A stretch of DNA of 64,000 nt from Pavona decussata (lineage: Eukaryota): assembly GCA_977016875.1 (NCBI GenBank), contig CDRNST010000025.1:372001-436000 (forward strand), given 5' to 3'. The position numbers and the translations under genes are program-made. A model generated the notes under the pieces. The model ran no database searches, was not told where the DNA came from, and saw only the letters and a list, made by a program, of their open reading frames with translations. The stretch's first letter is position 1, and every line of letters starts with the position of its first letter. This document shows positions 8,883 through 36,599 of this stretch, in pieces.

Positions 8883-9812
8883 TCAAGGCATCTGAATCTC
8901 ATTCTGGGGCACTGGTCCGCGACAGAATATTATGCGTTTAAATCCTTCTTTAAAGCTCGAACTGCGAAAGGCGTAAAACATCGGATTAAGACATAAACTA
9001 CAATAAAAACCTAACAGGAAGAAAACCGAAAGATTTGAATACAACTTATGGTTTATCTCTTTATCAACTCCTGACGCTAAAACTGTGTACAAAATAGCAA
9101 TTGGTCCATAATCAATAACAAATCCTGTAGTTGCCAGGATGAATGTTATAACAAGTTTCTTTTTCTCAGAACTTCTGTCTTCGTTAGTGTCCGCAGCACA
9201 AACCGTGTGAGAAAAGTACAGTCCTTTCATCAAGGATCCATAGCAATAAAGAAATACCATCAATGGAATATAGGCGCTAATAATGCCGTATATGATCCCA
9301 AAAACCTTGCTTTTCGTACTCAAAGGCAAGTTCCATGGGCCAGTACATCTTGAAAGCGATTCGCTCCATTCCTGAACAAAGAATTCTGGAAAAACGGTGA
9401 AAAAGCTTAAGATCCAAACGAGAGCTATTGCCTGCTTGATGTTCTCCTCTGTTAATCGTAAACCCGTTCGGAAAGGCTTTAGCAAAGCGTGATATCTTTC
9501 TATCGCCAGCAACGAAAGAGTTAGTGCTGAGGTAGTTATTAAAATATCACTGAGAACTAAGAACTTGCAAGAGAATTTCCCAAATACGCTGCTTGGATAT
9601 CCAATGTGATACGAAAAGAAATACAACGGAGCCAACAAAATGGTGATGACATCGCTTACAGCCAAGTTTGCCAAAAGGTAATTTGTTGTCGAATGCATGT
9701 CTCGTGTTTTGTAGACAATTCGGATGACCAATGTATTCCCAATGAATCCGATGATATAAACAGGAATAGCGGCCACGAAAAGTCGATAGTTAAGACTCTC
9801 ACTATTAATCAT
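8883..9812 (-). CDS. Class A GPCR, B-type copy B1 (309 aa, peptide-receptor-like orphan)
   Basis: Intact ORF. GNTLV (TM1), LAVSD (TM2), C3.25, ERY, W4.50, ECL2 Cys, NPMFY, helix 8. Confidence 0.92.
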   Translation of the reverse strand: MINSESLNYRLFVAAIPVYIIGFIGNTLVIRIVYKTRDMHSTTNYLLANLAVSDVITILLAPLYFFSYHIGYPSSVFGKFSCKFLVLSDILITTSALTLSLLAIERYHALLKPFRTGLRLTEENIKQAIALVWILSFFTVFPEFFVQEWSESLSRCTGPWNLPLSTKSKVFGIIYGIISAYIPLMVFLYCYGSLMKGLYFSHTVCAADTNEDRSSEKKKLVITFILATTGFVIDYGPIAILYTVLASGVDKEINHKLYSNLSVFFLLGFYCSLCLNPMFYAFRSSSFKEGFKRIIFCRGPVPQNEIQMP

Positions 9813-9916
9813 GATGTTTCCAGGTTTATCTTAAGATGTCTTTCACTTCTCCTAGCTTGGATAAAAATAGCTTGCAGTGATAGCCAACATCATCCATTCA
9901 CACATATTGTTTACTG

Positions 9917-9924
9917 TGACGTCA
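9917..9924. promoter_or_regulatory. Palindromic CRE-like site TGACGTCA 105 bp upstream of the B1 ATG (also at 17725-17732 for B2)
   Basis: Exact octamer at the same offset in both B copies. The conservation may only reflect recent duplication. Confidence 0.3.
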
Positions 9925-11891
9925 CATGCGTGGGTAATAATATGGTGACGAGTGAGATTAGGAATTATATTTTCATGTCACGCGTTTTGTCTAAATTCTA
10001 ATAATTTAGGTCAAGGAAATTATTAGAATTTGGACAAGCGCAAGTGAAATCATTTCCTAATGTAACGAGTATACCATCTCATAACCTTTTAAATTACGCC
10101 CCCAATCGTCCGTTTCTGACTTGTTTATTGTATCGAGCAATGTGCCGTGATGTTTTTTAGTTTACTTGTGAAATTATATATTACCGCTGAAATCTCGCGC
10201 CAAAATTAAGGAGTAATTTGTAACCCATGGTATTATGTATGAAACTACACAGTATGCCTTTTCGTTGACAACATATACTGCGTAAATTCATTATTCAGTT
10301 TGAGCCTTACAACAAACATATCACAAACCTGTCACAGATCACAAACTCTGTCACTTAAGCCACCAGCTAGCGCAAACAATTGGTAGATCCACCTGCTTTT
10401 CCTGCGTAAGAGTTAAGAGATAAACTACAAAAAGAATCAATAACACAATTTTTAATTAGTTTCTTCCCATTGTCGTCCACTCTTATGTTCTCAAATACTC
10501 AGGAGCGCTCATTTTACAAAATACTTAAAATGATTTCTCCTGTGTTGAAAGAATGTTTTCTGCCCTTTTAAAGACATATTTGTGTAAGCTACCACAAATT
10601 GATCTTTTCGGATGCTCTTGCAGAATGTTTTGGGAAACGGAAGTTTATTCCTCGAATTTACTGGCTGTTGCTGGTTTTACTAAATGCTCGCTGACTCTTT
10701 TTGCATTTTAAACGACATACCTACCCCTTCGAAAACGAAAGAAATTAGTTTGCCCGCAGTGTTATGAGATTTCTAAAGAAGAAATCTTTAGATTTTCTGT
10801 GCAACTAAATCCGAATTTCTAAGGCTAAAGGCCATTGTAACATATATACACAGAAATCAACCCTTGGGTACCCCTGAGAGTTGGGACACTGCACGTAGCA
10901 TTAATTAATTCACAAGTAGGATGAGTTTTCAGGTGTGTCCATCTGGCGATATGTTGAAAGAAGTCGACCGCTTTAATAACTTTCGCTTGTTCACGAACGG
11001 CGTATATGTTCGCAAGAAAGGATTGCTTTTTCGTTTTGTTCGGTTCCTTTATCGAAATATGCGTTTAAAATAAGTGGAAACAATCTCTTTTTCGTTTCCC
11101 GATTATAATAATGTCTCACGTTTTCTTCATCTTGAATCACCTGGCAAATGTCTAAGGCTGAAAATGATTGCGGCAAAAATTTGTTGATAGATGTTACAGC
11201 TTAATAGGAATAAGCTAATGCTGTGTTAAGAATAACATAAGGGTGAAATACTGTTTCAGGTCTTTAAAAGTTTTTTTTTGACAATTTCGTGCGAAAAGAA
11301 ATGCAATGCCCAAGTGCCAGTTTAATAATATTAATTTTATGTTTATTTGCATCGATGCTGACTAAAATTACAAGTCCAACCTGCTGTCATTAATGCATAA
11401 TGGGTGAAAAAATAACCTGTTTTCTAACTGCTTAGTGTCATTTTATATTCTGTGAATTTTTTCTATTATTATTATTGTTCTTAATATTATCTTCCATTTA
11501 TCTCTGTTTTATTTTCACAATGGTTTGAGAAATTGCACAAAAATGCTTGATTGAAATGGTGCTTTCTCAGTTAAATATGTTCAGTGAAGCTCATTCACAA
11601 TAGAACCGAATATTGCTCAAAATTATTTCCTATTTAATTTACTTCAATAATCTTCCCGCTCTGTAAAAGTAATTTTAAACATGGTGCGAAAACCTCCAAT
11701 AGGTTGCTAAGAACTGATCATTTAATTTGCCGGACAAAAATAATTTTTGGTCTGTTTAGTCATAACTGCCTAAATTATTGATCCTTGTCAAATAAAGGGA
11801 AAATTGTCTACCAGGTGTTTTCTGGCCAAGTTTCAAGTTTAGGCTGGCCTTTAAACAAGCTCATTGTTCGATTGGTCTGGTGATAGCTAAT

Positions 11892-12024
11892 TGAGTGTGT
11901 GCACGGCGGCCATGTTGGAGGACTAAAGCAATAGAAGATATTTGCATAAAAATAAAATCTAGTTCCCAAAGGAAAAATATTGTATTGTTTCGGTCCTCCA
12001 ACATGGCCGTCGTGCACACATTCT
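11892..12024. mobile_element. MITE, paralog of 400-532
   Basis: Same TIRs and same insertion site upstream of A3. Confidence 0.85.
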
Positions 12025-25737: not shown

Positions 25738-26634
25738 ATGAATGACCCTAGCAGCGTGTGGTTTATCCTTCCTATGGCCGCCATTCCATTCTTCATCACT
25801 GGATTAATTGGAAACGTGTTAGTCATCCGAATTGTTCATACAACACGCGACATGCATACGACGACGAATTACCTCTTGGCTAACCTAGCTGTTGGCGACG
25901 TTATCACCATTTTGTGTCTGTTTCCATCCTTCTTGATTTACAATCAACCAGACTATCCAGTTGGAAAATTTGTTTGCAAGTCGTCAACGATCGGTAGCAC
26001 TTCCTTACTCTGTTCTTCCTTTACTCTGACGGTACTAGTGGTGGAAAGATATCACGCTTTGCTGAAGCCTTTCAGAACAGGATTACGGTTAAAAGAAGAC
26101 AACATTAAACAGGCGATCGCTGCTGTTTAGATATCAAGCGTCGCCATCTCTCTGCCCGGCTTCTTTTTAAGTGAATGGAGCGAAAAACACTCTTCATGTG
26201 TCACGCACAAAGTGCACGTCCTCATAATTTGTGTAGTTAGCACTTATATTCCAACAACAGTATTTCTTTATTGTTATGGATCCTTGATCAAAGCACTGTA
26301 CTTTTCTTACACGCTATGTGCTAAAAACACTGATGAAGAAAGAAACGATTCTGAGAAAAAAAAGCTTGTTATTACATTTATCCTAGCGACTGCAGGATTT
26401 GTTATTGGTTATGGACCAATCGCATTTTTTCACACAGTTAATTTTTCAGGAGACGATGAGCACATAAGCTTTGAATTCTCTAAACTTTCAGGCGTATTTT
26501 ACTTTATCTTCTTTTGTAGTCTATGTCTTAATCCTATTTTATACGCCTTTCGTAGTGCAAACTACAGAGAAGGATTTAAACGCATAATATTCTGTCGCAA
26601 ACAGCCATCACAGAATGGCATGCAAATGTCATGA
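25738..26634 (+). pseudogene. Class A GPCR, diverged A-type copy A5, TM4 Trp>stop
   Basis: TAG at 26128-26130 where paralogs have TGG (W4.50). The frame continues in phase to TGA at 26634. Confidence 0.88.
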
Positions 26635-28239: not shown

Positions 28240-28269
28240 CTACTTGTTCGTTTTGAGACAAGCTGACAC
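28240..28269 (-). CDS. Predicted terminal coding exon of the HEPN-NACHT-WD40 gene (VSACLKTNK*)
   Basis: Preceded by tgttttcatctttttcttaAG. Phase 0 matches the upstream predicted exon. Confidence 0.35.
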   Translation of the reverse strand: MSACLKTNK

Positions 28270-28340
28270 CTTAAGAAAAAGATGAAAACATAAAAGCAAG
28301 TAAATGTTTGTGAGCAATGAGATGATATGTGTTAAACCTG

Positions 28341-28581
28341 GGCCCGGGTGTTCAAAGGGTGAAAAACGCTATCCGCCAGGCCTCGGTTGTTCAAAGTGCG
28401 GATAACTCTATCCAGTGGATAAATCGCTATCCAGCGGATAAAATGTACTTTAAGCAATACATTTTATCCTCTGTATAGCGATTTATCCGCTGGATAAAGT
28501 TATCCGCACTTTGAACAACTGGGACCAGATAAATTGCTATATAGTGGATAGTGAAGTTTGTTTTGTTATCACCCATCCGCC

Positions 28582-28612
<31 letters not shown>

Positions 28613-28634
28613 TCCCCCTTTGAACAAATGGGGC
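28341..28634. mobile_element. Palindromic MITE (ggccc..gttgttcaaa TIR family) with a related copy nested at 28380-28525
   Basis: Two pairs of gttcaaa/tttgaac termini. The inner copy is flanked by CAG on both sides. Many ggata/tatcc subrepeats. Confidence 0.75.
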
Positions 28635-28742
28635 CTAGATGCGAGATTTTCCTTTCTTCTTTTTGTTGTTCTTGTTGTTTTCTTTTTTCGAGTATGTCTG
28701 TGTAATTGGCTGAGAAAAAACATCTATTGAAGTAAATTATTA

Positions 28743-28929
28743 CACTCAGCTCCCTTTGTTGTGGACACCCTCGGAACCGCGAGTTAGTGTCCTTACTAGC
28801 GAGAGTCCGTAATAGCGGGAATTTATTTCAGTCAAACGTCTGTACTTTATTTTTGCCGGGAATTTAGCTGCTGCCTGCATCATAGGGGTATCCATAATAG
28901 CGAGGTGTCCGCTACGCGAGAGTTCACTG
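28743..28929. mobile_element. Degenerate TA-flanked (Tc1/mariner-type) MITE
   Basis: ta-cactcagctcc..ggacacc at left, ggtgtccgc..gagagttcactg-ta at right. Confidence 0.55.
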
Positions 28930-29645
28930 TAAATGGTATTATTCAGTTCGACACGAAACACTGGGCCACTGGAGACTAAGACGAGCCCGTGACCTTCTAC
29001 ATATCGCACACAACATCCCTACTATATTTTTCAATATTGTTGCATCTTTTGGAAATCCAAAGCACTAGTTTTACCTGCCATCTGCTTCGCTAAAAACATT
29101 ATTCTCTGTCTAGCAAACGAGTATTTTAACTTCTGTAAAAAATATGTCTTTCAAACCTTTGTCAGACCAACTCTCTTGAGCAAGCAAAAAGGCTAGGCAG
29201 AAGAAAGCGAAAACTTGGAAGTAGACCAGGTCATGTTGTTAAAGTAAAATTGTTTAATCATTGCTTTATTCGGACTCCTGTTTAACTTCCAATTGCTTTA
29301 AGACTGGTTCAGCTCCCTGGACAAAGTTGATTGCTACAAACGCCTTTTTTTCCTTCCTTTCAGAGACACCAAATTACTTGGCCGTGGCGCCCCCTGTAGT
29401 AGACTAATGCGTGACGACTATACTGAGGACGAAATCACAATACATCCTTGATATAATCATGCTACTCTTGGCCATGTGGAGAGCAAAAATCGGTTGTGCT
29501 GTTATCAAGAGGAAACATAGCATTAAGTACAGCTACGTTTAATGCCTGCAAACTAGTTCAAAGTTAGCAAAAATTATGTATCCTTGAAATCCGAACTCTT
29601 GAGTGTAAATTCAACTCAAAAAGCTACAAAAAGTACATTGCTTAC

Positions 29646-29700
29646 CTCCTTTTTTGTTGCATCTTTTCCAGGTGTTTCGTTGGTCAAAGTGCGCTGAACA
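29646..29700 (-). CDS. Predicted 55-nt coding exon of the HEPN-NACHT-WD40 gene (SVQRTLTNETPGKDATKKE)
   Basis: Acceptor ttattatttcttAG and donor GAG|GTAAGC. Open in the phase-2 frame left by the donor AG|GTAATA at 30081/30080. Confidence 0.5.
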
Positions 29701-30076
29701 CTAAGAAATAATATTAAAAAACAGGATATAGTTAGAATGTGTTTTCTTTAAAATTTACGGAGTGCTAGCGCACCAGTTACATTTCTTTTCACAGTGATGT
29801 TAAAACAAGTATTAGAGGTTAACCCATAATTTTCTCTTTGTTAGCCAGTAGATTACCTCTCTTTTTTCCTCTCTTTTTTTCTGCACCTTCTACAGCTGAT
29901 TTGTTTGTCACGCTGCGCGTGAATGTGTTTTCTTTTAAAATTTACAGACTGTGAGCACACTAGTTACATTATAATCTTTTCACTGAGATCCTGAAACTGG
30001 CACTACGGAGGTTTTGTTGTGCTTTTTTACCTTGAAATAGCATTTGCAAGATTAGAGCAGACAGGAAACTCGACTA

Positions 30077-32197
30077 TTACCTTTCAATCATTCTGCTCTC
30101 CTCACTTCTTGACAAGCGCACTCGAAGGAGTCTGAAGTTACAGCCTGATAGTCCGATGGCAATGAGGGGCATACGTAGACAGGCCCCAAGACAGAAAGGC
30201 CGTTCCTCGATATTCAAGACACTGAGTAGATGGCCAGATCTGATACTAAACAGCCTAACAATGTTAACACGACTGCAGCAAACCAAAGACTCGCCATCAC
30301 TGACAATCTTACAGTCGACAATGTCAAAATGACCGGGAAGTAAAGTGTGCACGGTTGTCCCTGTGGGAACGTTAAGAACGTGCACTCCACAGCCATTTTC
30401 AAGAGTGTTCCACGTAACAACCACATCTCCTTTGGGAGGGAACACGCATCGTGCAAACTGGCCTGGCCTTACTTCTGGGTGCAAGGGCCCCATGTGTCTT
30501 TGCCACATCACTGAAGAGGTATTTGACAATCCGCCCATCCCCAAGTATTCGAGACTTCCAGATGCTTCATTAATGATAGCCAAATCTGTGCTGTTGTTGT
30601 TACATGCCAACACCCTTCTCTGTTGAAGACAAACCGAAATGGTTGACATAACGTCTCCTCTGGAAGTAGCCAGAATGGTCACCTCAGCATGCCTTCCCAC
30701 ACATGCCACTTGCTCCTCAGATAAAGGGATCACTTTTCGGATTTCAGTCAAGTTGGACCAACGTCGGACACACACAGTCAACTCACAATTCCAGAGTTCA
30801 GGGCAATTTCCTCTTGTGAGTAAAACAACACCATCTGCAACAGGTGTGAGTGAGATGATCCAAGCTTCTTTTTGTGCCCTCAGCTCCAAACTAGAAACGT
30901 CCCACACAGTTAACTTTGTTTGAGTTTCCCACTCTTTGGTTGCCACGTAAACTCTCTCGCCATTTAAAGAAAAGCTAACCTCTCTCACCAGAGCTTTCGA
31001 ATTCTTCCCTTTTCCCTTCAGTTCAGCAACACTTAGAATACTCAAGTAGTTTAGATCAGGGCTACCCATTAATACACTTTCTTCACCAAGCTTGGCGATG
31101 CGACCAACGAAACAAAATGGAATTACACTGGCGAACTGGTCACTTGAAACGTCAATAGGGTCCCCTAGAAGAAATACTTCATCACTGCCAAACCGATGAG
31201 TGTGTCGTTCACGTTCAAAAAATTCTGCATGCCAACCTTTTGCAAGAGTTTTAAAACGACAGGTTCTTTTATAACCCAGTCTCATATGCAGACAAACAAT
31301 CTCTTGGTTGTCAACAGAAAAATTCATAAATCCAATACCCCATCCTGGATCAAACATTGTACGATACTTTGCCAAACCATTCGCCAAATCAACTGAATAA
31401 ATCGCACCTGTTGAACCGAAGCCATCATATGAAACCGCTACGAGCCTCCCATCATCAGACCATGCAAAAGAAAAAATTCTTGCATATTCGTTGACCATGA
31501 TACGAGTAACCTCTGTACCATTTTCAAGATTCCACATAATTACACAGTTACGTTTTCCTGGAAAATCAGTTAACATTTTGCTTTTGTCTTTACAAAAAGC
31601 ACAAACGGTAAAAATGCAGTCACTCGCAGGAAAGAGTTTCTTCACGTCTCCCCCAATGGTATATACGCTGGCAAGGTTTCCCTGTAAGATGAAGTCACCA
31701 AGGGGATAGAAAGCAACCGACTGGTAAAATGACATAGAACCACAATACCAGGCCCTATATGCAGTTCCAGGAGGCACGGCTTTCCAGCTGTGATATTTGT
31801 CATAGTTTCTCTTTACTAAGACTTGCCTCACCCATTCTAGCTGCCCAGTCTTGAGGGACCAGAGCTGAACTGTTCCATCCCAACACTCGCATACCGTGTA
31901 GTCTAAATCTGGAGAAACATCGGAACAGCACACGGCACTTGAACAATAAAACTGTGCTTGGATAACCCTTTGTGGACCCAGGTTGTCAATGTATTCTATG
32001 AATGGTACATCAAGGAACCTGGTCTGTAGAACATTTATCGCTTCTGGATGAAGTTCTCCTCCTCCTTCATTCAGAGCTGTTTGGAGGATAACCCAAGGAA
32101 GGTCCCTTAAGGTACTGCTGTACTTCCTTAACAGAAATACCAAGGTACTCAAGGATCTCTGGCTTCCTTCAGACAATAGGACTGATGTTTCCCTCTC
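30077..32197 (-). CDS. C-terminal WD40/beta-propeller half of an NLR-like HEPN-NACHT-WD40 protein
   Basis: ~700-aa ORF with WD-like units (DGTVQLWSLKTG, VIMWNLENG, FAWSDDG, LTVWDVSS, VRLFSIRSG). Continues the NACHT ORF after a frame change. Confidence 0.85.
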   Translation of the reverse strand, partial: ERETSVLLSEGSQRSLSTLVFLLRKYSSTLRDLPWVILQTALNEGGGELHPEAINVLQTRFLDVPFIEYIDNLGPQRVIQAQFYCSSAVCCSDVSPDLDYTVCECWDGTVQLWSLKTGQLEWVRQVLVKRNYDKYHSWKAVPPGTAYRAWYCGSMSFYQSVAFYPLGDFILQGNLASVYTIGGDVKKLFPASDCIFTVCAFCKDKSKMLTDFPGKRNCVIMWNLENGTEVTRIMVNEYARIFSFAWSDDGRLVAVSYDGFGSTGAIYSVDLANGLAKYRTMFDPGWGIGFMNFSVDNQEIVCLHMRLGYKRTCRFKTLAKGWHAEFFERERHTHRFGSDEVFLLGDPIDVSSDQFASVIPFCFVGRIAKLGEESVLMGSPDLNYLSILSVAELKGKGKNSKALVREVSFSLNGERVYVATKEWETQTKLTVWDVSSLELRAQKEAWIISLTPVADGVVLLTRGNCPELWNCELTVCVRRWSNLTEIRKVIPLSEEQVACVGRHAEVTILATSRGDVMSTISVCLQQRRVLACNNNSTDLAIINEASGSLEYLGMGGLSNTSSVMWQRHMGPLHPEVRPGQFARCVFPPKGDVVVTWNTLENGCGVHVLNVPTGTTVHTLLPGHFDIVDCKIVSDGESLVCCSRVNIVRLFSIRSGHLLSVLNIEERPFCLGACLRMPLIAIGLSGCNFRLLRVRLSRSEESRMIER

Positions 32198-32217
32198 CTG
32201 AAAACAAAACATCTCTT

Positions 32218-34302
32218 TCAATTGAAAGCTGCTACACTGTTCACACAGAGCTTGGCATACACAAGGTCTAAGCTTACCACGTACTTCTTCACCCACTCCT
32301 CCACGCTGTATGGTCTTCTGATTCCATCTAACAGTAACATGTGGTGCGTACCATGCTGAAGGGCATACGTTTCAGTGCCAACATACTGTGCATTACAAGA
32401 GCCTCTTTCCTTCACACACTCAAGCTCTTCAGCACAAAGTTTAGAGAGAATCAGGTGACCTTCCTGCTCATCCATAATGTAGTCATGCTCCCCGTAGCTT
32501 GAAACATCTGTAAGCCAGTCTTTAACTGACTTATGAATGACATGAAGACAGTCATCACGAATAGGGAGAAGGGAAGACACACTTCCTACAGCTTTTCGAA
32601 CCTTCTGCCTTGATACCAACGAGTTGCTGCTTGGTGCCAATATCTTGTAGACAAAACCAATTGGCAAGGGTTCTGTTGCAACAGTAACAGCACAAAGCAA
32701 ATTCAGGAAATTCTCTTGTCGGATACCAAGCTCCTTGATAAGCTCATTCTCGAGTCGTTTGAAATAGGAGTCATAGACAGAAGAAATCCCTAATGGAAGA
32801 TTGACATCAAGATTTCCTTGAACTAGGACTGATGGATTCTCTTCGATAAATGAAACCAGAAATGAAGCATACAGCATGAGACCCTCAGACTTCAACACTA
32901 GCTTGTTCAAAATGGCTTCAGCGTCTTCTGGTTTAATGACATGCTGTAGCTTCCTTTCATATAATGTCCTGACATCATCCAAATTCAGTTCATCGTTTGC
33001 CTCCAGCTGAAATGGTTTTAAATGTTTCAATGCTTCTGTGATGTTGCGCTGTGGACGAGTGGTAACTAAAAATCTAATCCAAACTGGAAGCTTGGAAAAG
33101 TGATTTGCAATCACATCAAGCAACTCATTGCGTTCCTGGTATTCACTTTCATCCAGGCCATCTATCACCATAAGCATGCTTGTTCTGGGCTCAGTTACGG
33201 TGCTCAGGGGTTCCTTGAAAAGCACTGCAAACAGTTCTTCCACTCCCATGTTGTTAAGATCGCTGCCCAAGTTTCTTGACAGCAGTTCTTCAAGAGCACA
33301 TTTGTACTCTGGCAGAGAATGGGATAAGTGACAGGCCAACGACTGAAGCATCAACTGAGGATTTCGGTAACGAATGTTATTGTGTTGACAAAAGTGGCTC
33401 CCTGACAATCTGCCAGCGTCTTGCATTCTTTGACAAATAACAGCGGCGATCACTGACTTCCCCATTCCTGCATTTCCACTGATTACCATCACGCGATTCT
33501 GCGAGCTTGCGTCATCCATCCACTGTTGTACTCTTCTAAAAACCCACTCACGTGTATGGTCTTGAAATTTCTGCAAGTGATACTCGATGTCTCCTCTAAA
33601 CTCTGACTTGGCAAGGTTCTGACGATTGCTTGAGACCCGCTTGAATTCTTTGAGGTCTGCCTGGATAGTGTCTAAAGATTGCCGTATGTCATTGAGCTGT
33701 GCCTTAATGTCCTCTTCCCTGCTCACCCAGTCAAACAACACATCAAGATAATCTTCCTCCCCACAGTGCTCTGTCTTCAGTCTATCTATTTCAGCTTGAT
33801 CCAGCCCAAGAGCCACAAGAACAGCGCTGATTTCTAGCCAAAGCGATTGGAATGCTGCAGCATCAATACCTGTGGTCGTCACATGACCATACAACACATT
33901 ACGATAGTATTTAACGCGGGCGAGGTTAGCCTCAAGTGAGGGGTCACCTGGCGGTGGCTTAGTGTGCCACCCCGATGTGGGAGGAGGGAGGCCACAAATC
34001 TCGATAAGTAGGAGAAACAGGAGAGTGATATCAAAAGTATTGGAGTTTGGGACACCTCCAGCAGGCGGGAATAATTTTTCCCACTGATGGCCATTTAGAA
34101 TTCTTCGACGCAAAAGGTTGTTAAGAATTGAATAACTGGTATTGAGATCCGCAGCTAAGTTGGCTGGAGGGTGATGACGATCAAAAACGTTCCTTAAGAC
34201 TGTTGTTCCGCCATCGATGAGAAGCCTTCTAAGCTTGCCTCCATTTGTCTTCTCTGGCGAACTGACCAAGGGTTTTGTTGTTGCTGGTACTGCTGTTGCC
34301 AT
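32218..34302 (-). CDS. N-terminal half: DZIP3-like HEPN domain, short coiled coil, NACHT (STAND) NTPase
   Basis: HEPN-type FDITLLFLLL..ICGL..P..GW and R-N-x4-H (RNVLYGH, 33903-33883). Walker A GNAGMGKS (33477-33454). Walker B MLMVIDGLDE (to 33148). FLVTTRP sensor. HKSVKDWL winged-helix motif. A splice acceptor (ctttcttttgtcAG) lies ~36 nt before the ATG. Confidence 0.9.
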   Translation of the reverse strand: MATAVPATTKPLVSSPEKTNGGKLRRLLIDGGTTVLRNVFDRHHPPANLAADLNTSYSILNNLLRRRILNGHQWEKLFPPAGGVPNSNTFDITLLFLLLIEICGLPPPTSGWHTKPPPGDPSLEANLARVKYYRNVLYGHVTTTGIDAAAFQSLWLEISAVLVALGLDQAEIDRLKTEHCGEEDYLDVLFDWVSREEDIKAQLNDIRQSLDTIQADLKEFKRVSSNRQNLAKSEFRGDIEYHLQKFQDHTREWVFRRVQQWMDDASSQNRVMVISGNAGMGKSVIAAVICQRMQDAGRLSGSHFCQHNNIRYRNPQLMLQSLACHLSHSLPEYKCALEELLSRNLGSDLNNMGVEELFAVLFKEPLSTVTEPRTSMLMVIDGLDESEYQERNELLDVIANHFSKLPVWIRFLVTTRPQRNITEALKHLKPFQLEANDELNLDDVRTLYERKLQHVIKPEDAEAILNKLVLKSEGLMLYASFLVSFIEENPSVLVQGNLDVNLPLGISSVYDSYFKRLENELIKELGIRQENFLNLLCAVTVATEPLPIGFVYKILAPSSNSLVSRQKVRKAVGSVSSLLPIRDDCLHVIHKSVKDWLTDVSSYGEHDYIMDEQEGHLILSKLCAEELECVKERGSCNAQYVGTETYALQHGTHHMLLLDGIRRPYSVEEWVKKYVVSLDLVYAKLCVNSVAAFN

Positions 34303-34736
34303 TCAAGTGAGAGGCGCAAAACCACTAGTACATCTGTCTGACAAAAGAAAGAACGTCACTGCAGGTTTGTACGATCGCTTCTAACGCAAACGTACATATA
34401 TTTTTTTGTTTATTGTGGGGTATGCAGAAACTGCGAACCATATATGCACCAGCGAGGAACTGGATTACGATAAATAACCTTTTTTGGCATTTTGATCAAA
34501 ATGGTAAATTAAAGTCACTGAGAATTCTTCACTTCATTGCCAAAAAAAAAAAAGTCACATCTGCTTTGCTTTACAGAGTTAACCAACATAACATAATATT
34601 ACAGCTCTACACTGAATACAGGAATTGTGGCTCGCTATTGAAAAGCTGAGAAAATCCACCGAAGGTCAGGCAAGTGCCGGGTCTTATTGAAAGAACTGTT
34701 GAGGGTACGTGCGAGGGGTTCTTTAATTCCAGTTAA

Positions 34737-35277
34737 AGGGGTATCGAATGGTCTCATTAAATTTAAAAGTGCTCGCAAAATTTGGCCTTTGCTCGAATTG
34801 CTCGCAAAAATTACACGGGCGCCCGTTTGCTCGTGCTCGCAAAATTTTTGCAACTGCTCGCATGCTCGCATTCTCGTTAACATGTGCTCGATTGCTCGAA
34901 ATTTCGTTAATCCTCCTTTGTAGTTATTCTTATCTATATATAAACGATAAATCAGTTATGATATGGTTAAAACAAAAAGGTTGAAGTATCCTTACCTCTG
35001 GCTTCAGTCTTTCTTCAACAGTTCAGCCTGTAACTGTTGTTCTGTTTTGGAGGTGTCAGCCAGATTATTGGCTATTACTTGGCGCAAAACAACGTATCCT
35101 ATTAATGAAAGAGAGATTCCAGCCAGCGGAAAACTTACGACTACTCGAAGTGCTCGCTGTCCGCCATCTGTATTTTCTAAAGTGCTCGCTGAAAAATTTG
35201 ACAACTGCTCGTGCTTGCAAAAATAAACACACTGCTCGCATGCTCGCAAATGCTCGCAAAGACCATTCGATACCCCT
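34737..35277. mobile_element. MITE with 17-bp TIR and 6-bp TSD AGTTAA
   Basis: aggggtatcgaatggtc / gaccattcgatacccct. AGTTAA at 34731-34736 and 35278-35283. Many internal TGCTCG subterminal repeats. Confidence 0.85.
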
Positions 35278-36599
35278 AGTTAAATTAAACAACAGGTGGT
35301 CACCTTTAGGGTGGTAGGGGAGAATAAGCCATCTGAAGAAGTGATGGGGGTAGGGAGGGAGGTACTTTGGGGGCAGGGGGGTACTAAGTGTATCTTTATC
35401 TTATACAATAAGTGAAACATAAGAACTAACATAAACATTGTCATCAGATTTGTATGCATTGCATGCGTATGTTTACAAATTGCTGAAGCAAGTACTATCA
35501 GCACAAAGAACGAAGATGTAAGCAGTGTTTCAGATATAACAGGGAGCTCACGTCAAAAACCTGAGAAAGCTGGCTTCTTTCTTGCCGCAGCAAATTGAGT
35601 GGTAAACTCAAGAAGATTTGGAGAGAACCAGAGCTATTGACCCGTCAAAATTTTTCATTGACTCCCTAACTTTGAAAGTTATAATCAGGAACACACTCAC
35701 GCCTCTTCACAAAGCAAAAAATTAGATGACCAGCAATTTTTTTACTACACCGCCTTGACTCTTGGTGTAAAATTATAGTTGAATTCGTTATTTTTAAAGC
35801 GCCAAAATTATGAATAGTGTTCGGATGTCTGATGTCTTAAAGAAGTGAAAAGTCCACCACTGTGGCTCAACGTAACATTCACTGCCATTCTTCAATGGCA
35901 AAAGGTTCACAGCACAAAACTTGTAAACTTTCTCCCTTCATTTTCAGGATTATTACTTTAAGACTTTTATAACAATATTAATCGACGCCACCTGTTATGA
36001 ATGCCACTTTAAATTGTTGTTGTTGTCATCTTTGAAGGTTGTTTTTTGTTAATAATTTCCAGTGTAAACACCATTGCATTACCCCCAGTAAGAGAAGATT
36101 TGGCTTCTAAAATGAGCTTCATGCGGTCAAATATTTTGCAAGAAATCAGCACCTGTTTTATTACACTTACATAAGTGTATAATTTTAAAAGAAATAAGCG
36201 GATACCATTTTCTCCTTTTAGTTTTATAAGTGATATAATGCATCACCTTTTCATACTAAAATTTGCTTAAAGGGTAGGGTATGCAATCAAAGTTCATTGA
36301 TTTTTCCATATTAAATAGAGCTAGCAATAACAATTTACAAACCAAAATTAATTCACAATGGCTTTTCATCCCCATCTAATAGGGCATTTGACCTCGTAAT
36401 CAGTCCACATAGCAGGGAAGTCAAATGCCAGGGTATTTGCCTGGATACAGTGCAAATCAAATCAACTCGAATAACTTTGTTATTCCAAGGTTTTCCATCA
36501 GTTACATCCAGTACATCATTACACATATAATCAATCAAAACACTATCCACAAGAATTCATAATATAACCTCACCTACACTACAAATAAATAGAGTAAAC

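Follow-up and report, generated by a model that had tools for sequence, protein, structure and literature searches.

Short introns that sidestep frameshifts were classed as 'dubious' in the re-annotation of rice LRR receptors, and the same had been seen earlier in Arabidopsis NLRs (PMC9292849). Two criteria identify such an intron as false: it is not shared by other copies of the gene, and it is homologous to their coding sequence (PMC9292849). The locus described here lies in a 64,000-nt window of a coral genome (G000:C25:372001-436000), the window being the whole stretch of DNA that was analyzed. As in the rice receptors, an indel interrupts a long receptor exon, a short GT-AG segment restores the frame, the segment is intron-like in one copy only and homologous to coding sequence elsewhere, and the indel is validated by independent reads. 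Unlike the rice case, the affected gene comes from an animal, a coral, and is of the NACHT-WD40 type, its splice-like motifs are of unusual quality (~1% by simulation), and broken and intact alleles are both seen. Most probably, the locus carries a segregating 5-nt frameshift allele within a tandemly amplified NLR-like family and the GT...AG bracket around the frame break is coincidental, an ordinary situation.

Two further systems invite comparison. Coral NACHT/NLR-like genes with DZIP3-like HEPN domains and WD40 repeats are amplified by tandem duplication (PMC10236652; HEPN survey, PMC3710099). The present gene shares their Pfam domain order and has its paralogs in tandem clusters; unlike these relatives, it is itself a singleton on another contig with a segregating frameshift. 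Any function of the family members is a predicted one. Intronization and exitrons share with this locus a canonical GT and AG inside a coding exon and a length that, without the insertion, is a multiple of three. Unlike them, the locus yielded none of the spliced transcripts that are their defining feature, which were sought in the contigs of four runs.

The gene is read from the minus strand as two long ORFs in different frames. ORF 1 (32218-34302) encodes 694 aa comprising a HEPN_DZIP3 domain (PF18738, E-value 6.6e-45), an NPHP3_N/NACHT P-loop NTPase (PF24883, 8.1e-30; PF05729, 1e-9), and a TANC1-like winged helix, while ORF 2 (30077-32296) encodes 739 aa with WD40 repeats; PF25521 (5.9e-7) and PF00400 (9e-8) complete the Pfam matches over the two. 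Walker-type motifs (GNAGMGKS and MVIDGLDE) and a HEPN-type Rx5H motif (R-N-V-L-Y-G-H) are visible in the ORF 1 translation. With HEPN_DZIP3, a NACHT carrying Walker A/B, a winged helix, and C-terminal WD40 repeats, the predicted product classifies as a HEPN_DZIP3-NACHT-WD40 STAND/NLR-like receptor. By class, its HEPN domain would act as an RNase and the receptor would oligomerize when triggered by a ligand. In a DNA search of the window's own genome (602 Mb, 1180 contigs), in which all own-genome searches were run, the junction turned up nowhere else, neither as a second copy nor as a haplotig. Directly past the 3′ UTR of the gene, on the opposite strand, two adjacent ORFs of 130 and 140 aa (25738-26634, plus strand) resemble a rhodopsin-type 7TM receptor (..LANLAVGDV.., ..ERYHAL.., ..NPILYAF..).

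The initial annotation placed an 80-nt intron (32198-32277, minus strand) at the break between the two ORFs, and the sequence features on which it relied are present as described. The donor-like site reads ...aag tac gtg|gtaagc..., its GT starting at 32277, and the acceptor-like site reads ...gttttgttttcag|gag..., also written ttttgttttCAG|G, its AG ending at 32198. Coordinate arithmetic confirms that excising the 80 nt joins ..WVKKYV to ERETSV.. in phase, giving 1381 aa to the genomic stop, and the excised piece does still read as coding sequence (VSLDLVYAKLCVNS). The donor-like GTAAGC (32272-32277, minus strand) spells the codons Val-Ser, where paralogs carry Asp (12/15) or Gly (3/15) in place of Ser. 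The acceptor-like gttttgttttCAG (32198-32210, minus strand) spells the codons (M)FCFQ, which are ancestral coding sequence: in the DNA alignment, the corresponding columns of the intact paralogs L010, L011, L013, and L014 read (ATC/GTC/ATT) GTT TGT GTT CAG. Both contexts, GTG|GTAAGC and gttttgttttCAG|G, are as good as those of the real splice sites of the gene; the donor matches a real one of this gene, GAG|GTAAGC, and the tract before the acceptor-like AG is just as rich in pyrimidines. No yTnAy branch-point motif occurs in the 80 nt, metazoan branch points being degenerate, and the real introns of the gene measure 380, 658, and 1376 nt.

Comparison with paralogs identifies the segment as coding sequence. 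We used as protein queries the 200 residues before the proposed donor and the 200 after the proposed acceptor, searched separately in the own genome. Both queries match the same 15 good loci, in each of which a single open frame (1415-2113 aa) contains the two halves. These intact single-exon paralogs form three tandem clusters, with five at 1.89-1.99 Mb of contig C66, seven at 1.00-1.16 Mb of C219, and three at 1.29-1.35 Mb of C214; the singleton copy lies on another contig. All 15 fetched paralog loci are open over the full 3.6 kb, and none (0/15) has an intron at this point. In the protein alignment, the paralog consensus between the flanks is ..YV(V/L)D(L/I/V)ELV(Y/F)AKLC(V/L)NSxxAxEDxVxxQ.., and the 80 nt are homologous to this best conserved local block of the paralogs (ELVYAKLCVNS...). 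The segment thus shows both marks of a false intron (PMC9292849). The alignment of paralogs that the initial annotation had called for therefore gives a clear answer, the segment being coding and intron-free in 15/15.

The alignments also locate the lesion. The own copy fits the paralog block in frame 0 up to NSVAA (..LVYAKLCVNSVAA) and in frame +2 from KEMFCFQ (..KEMFCFQERETSV), which places the frame change within gcagctttcaattgaaagag in the protein alignment. In the DNA alignment, all 15 paralogs have a 5-nt gap opposite TTCAA/CAATT of the own copy, which has 23 nt here vs 18 in the paralogs. The proposed intron is accordingly composed of 75 nt (25 codons) of sequence that is conserved and coding in the 15 paralogs plus a 5-nt insertion.

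The insertion (32220-32226, minus strand) can be placed as TTCAA, TCAAT, or CAATT within TTTCAATTG, and removing the 5 nt at any of the three placements leaves one product, GCAGCTTTGAAAGAG. Without it, the sequence reads GCA GCT TTG AAA GAG ATG, in-frame AALKEM, and not the A-S-I-E-E-M that was suggested on the assumption that one T and one A had to be dropped. The insertion causes the premature TGA of the HEPN-NACHT frame (32218-32220, minus strand). As read from the sequence, it also creates a perfect 14-nt palindrome, CTTTCAATTGAAAG (32215-32228), since the inserted TTCAA is reverse-complementary to TTGAA, the five bases that follow it. The palindrome suggests that the insertion may have arisen by a fold-back or template-switch copying error, or by hairpin-end repair. 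A transposon excision footprint was also considered; no target-site duplication pattern fits, and this origin is a bare possibility.

The bracket needs to be judged against chance. We placed 3000 simulated 5-nt insertions at random in the ORFs of the 15 paralogs and looked for GT..AG pairs of 40-150 nt that repair the frame. Some such pair repairs every simulated frameshift (3000/3000), a GTRAG donor with a YAG acceptor preceded by at least 8/10 pyrimidines repairs 26/3000 (0.9%), and a pair as good as the real bracket repairs 0/3000. The motif quality is a real coincidence, at roughly 1%, with ordinary components: an inherited acceptor tract and Val-Ser codons at the donor. The large exon of the gene contains nine GTRAG motifs and six acceptor-like sites in 4257 nt, a GTRAG density of 2.1 per kb vs 0.93 per kb in the paralogs. 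The coding sequence of the paralogs, 54 kb, contains a single G|GTAAG, about 13-fold fewer than the 1/4096 hexamer expectation, and this scarcity of strong donors hints at selection against cryptic splice sites in very long exons.

Transcript contigs define the real introns of the gene. All read evidence consists of assembled contigs from four runs, and contigs drop minor isoforms; the labels of the runs holding the stretch include 'coral metagenome'. In X1 (sample S1), a 5830-nt RNA contig of depth 44 is joined at 29700/30081 with GT..AG on the gene strand and, past 29644, resumes at 28267, again with GT..AG (loose letters at 28250-28267); a separate X1 contig contains the canonical 5′ UTR joint 34337/34996. 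Because it is joined at canonical GT..AG introns, the X1 contig represents mature mRNA. Its alignment to the genome is colinear over 30081-34338, and it is thus unspliced through 32198-32277. In X10, from another sample and study, the 3′ end is spliced too, and record 10 (32242-32445) is unspliced across the proposed donor. The joint 32278^32197, which the initial annotation had named as the transcript check, is absent from the contigs of the four runs. Conserved coding sequence in 15 intron-free paralogs, an mRNA that is unspliced here, and the missing joint leave its proposals of a young intron or a splice switch without support.

These joints yield a corrected gene model of four exons (all features on the minus strand), whose lengths come from the coordinates and from translating the exons one by one. 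The first exon, in the 5′ UTR, lies upstream of 34996 and is followed by a real GT-AG intron of 658 nt (34338-34995) and by the large exon (34337-30081), which codes for the whole HEPN-NACHT-WD40 architecture; the remainder of its coding part (30081-32197) contributes a helical linker and the WD40 repeats. A second real GT-AG intron (29701-30080, 380 nt, donor AG|GTAATA) precedes a small coding exon (29646-29700) consisting of a split codon and then VQRTLTNETPGKDATKKE. The third (28270-29645, 1376 nt) runs from GAG|GTAAGC to tttttcttaag|G, with the X1 loose end at 29644, and the last exon, from 28269, ends the spliced ORF with VSACLKTNK and a stop (28240-28269), with ~1.5 kb of contig beyond as 3′ UTR. 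The stop at 30077-30079, taken in the initial annotation as the end of the ORF at 30077, is therefore intronic and is removed by the donor at 30080. The intact allele, lacking the 5 nt, is predicted to code for 1406 aa if read to the genomic stop and for 1433 aa if its 3′ end is spliced as in X1, not for the 1381 aa given previously. In the assembled allele, the frame ends at residue 694.

This premature stop lies far upstream of two exon junctions. In many eukaryotes, a stop upstream of exon junctions marks an mRNA for nonsense-mediated decay. By stop position, the mRNA of the assembled allele would be a candidate for such decay, contig depth being no reliable gauge of expression. X4 has a depth of about 9,000-12,000 at 34644-35400 vs about 60 over the gene, which places the 5′ UTR exon and the presumed promoter in a high-copy repeat. 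At 29701-30080, the X10 joints differ from those in X1 (29700/29857 and 29918/30081, with six extra letters), which suggests allelic variation or a small alternative exon.

The colinear mRNA bears directly on the reading in which the segment is a weak cryptic intron or exitron, with the 75 or 80 nt spliced out in a minority of transcripts from both alleles, so that carriers of the insertion make some receptor lacking 25 residues. Its attractions are the strong donor and acceptor consensus at a chance expectation of ~1%, the length of 75 nt without the insertion, a multiple of three, and a donor-like motif that is unchanged in the X10 allele, where record 10 spans the donor and lists changes only at 32296-32324; minor isoforms would, moreover, be invisible to contigs. 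Against these stand the absence of the joint in four runs and main mRNA contigs that are unspliced here though spliced at the real introns. Such splicing would also delete ELVYAKLCVNS, the most conserved block of the region, from a segment that has no yTnAy and is far from the 380-1376 nt of the real introns. We consider this reading unlikely, and its stronger form, in which the 75-nt block is a low-level exitron in both alleles, a nascent intron that would buffer an immune receptor against a frameshift, very unlikely. If it were true, the insertion would lie inside the removed block, and carriers would keep some full-length receptor minus the 25 residues.

The coincidental bracket around a frameshift allele remains our preferred reading, and the distribution of the insertion among samples supports it. 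The X1 RNA contig (depth 44) carries the insertion without difference, as does X4, a third sample from a different study whose contigs are DNA-like and cover the introns. In X10, the sole contig over 32220 (depth 5.6) lacks the 5 nt, a difference of the size and position that the paralogs predict; beyond it, the changes listed for X10 and X4 include no coding indel. The insertion is thus polymorphic, present in X1 and X4 and absent in X10, and the X10 contig probably represents an intact allele in the species. The last option of the initial annotation, an indel or assembly error, holds in its first part only, the indel being real and segregating. Indels are a common error type of long-read assemblies, and a reference error would mean that the assembled individual truly has a continuous ORF; with the insertion present in the X1 RNA contig of sample S1 and again in X4, from a different sample and study, an assembly error is extremely unlikely.

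Protein databases were searched for further alleles. Word-index searches on either side of the junction returned no near-identical protein fragment crossing it (nothing above 66% identity), a result that is uninformative on the intact allele. Exact look-up of the 694-aa product returned only an ENA contig, 100% identical over 8085 nt, which does not count as independent support because it is probably the same assembly. The 90% cluster of the product contains only a 209-aa N-terminal fragment, 96% identical, which ends short of the junction.

Variation around the break gives some view of the haplotypes. Just upstream of it, X10 and X4 share seven differences within 29 nt (32296-32324), a divergent haplotype block that is possibly a gene-conversion tract. 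X4 pairs this block with the insertion, which therefore also occurs outside the reference haplotype. The X1 RNA contig alone lacks 11 nt at 33038-33048 (minus strand; CGCAACATCAC) that are present in the assembly, X10, X4, and X19, a loss that would bring in a stop at codon 434, within the NACHT region. This gap may mean that the reference sample, S1, has a second broken allele, or it may be a contig artifact. We also asked whether the two changes, an 11-nt gap and a 5-nt insertion (net -6), could cancel each other's effect, and rejected this: the shifted frame stops after 15 codons.

The same data can be read as a fixed, decaying pseudogene, with the functional allele gone and the X10 contig without the 5 nt being an artifact or coming from a very close sister taxon. 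The depth of that contig is only 5.6, the 11-nt gap at 33038 in the X1 RNA contig is a second frame break as in a decaying copy, and the GTRAG density is twice that of the paralogs. However, the position of the X10 gap is precisely the one that 15 paralogs independently predict for the extra 5 nt, a match not expected of random error, and X10 and X4 are free of other coding indels. The gene is also transcribed and correctly spliced, and its listed SNPs are enriched for synonymous changes: among 37 coding SNPs in a partial list for X10, X4, and X19, 17 are synonymous and 20 nonsynonymous. A synonymous share far above that of unconstrained mutation indicates that the locus was recently a working gene, and the SNP pattern is more in keeping with a young loss-of-function allele than with an old pseudogene. 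We regard fixed decay as quite unlikely.

For the segregating frameshift allele, the following course of events would account for the observations. The receptor architecture, HEPN(DZIP3)-NACHT-WD40, is coded in one large exon, as in the 15 paralogs. In the assembled individual, 5 nt would have been copied inverted from TTGAA, shifting the frame into the TGA at 32218-32220 and splitting the ORF into a 694-aa HEPN-NACHT piece and a WD40 piece that would go untranslated. The mRNA is processed at the real introns and, in the contigs, not within 32198-32277. In the population, the insertion would segregate, with at least one other individual carrying an uninterrupted allele, and the frameshift allele would be a loss-of-function or truncated allele.

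These results call for care in annotation. Where receptor families are large and evolve fast, a short GT-AG segment that 'rescues' a frameshifted copy on paper can nearly always be drawn, and here even a good-looking GT-AG bracket is contradicted by paralogs and mRNA. A segregating frameshift in a receptor gene of this type is an ordinary event of an already-known kind. The gene exists as truncating and intact alleles, and such presence/absence-of-function variation is usual for NLR-type genes.
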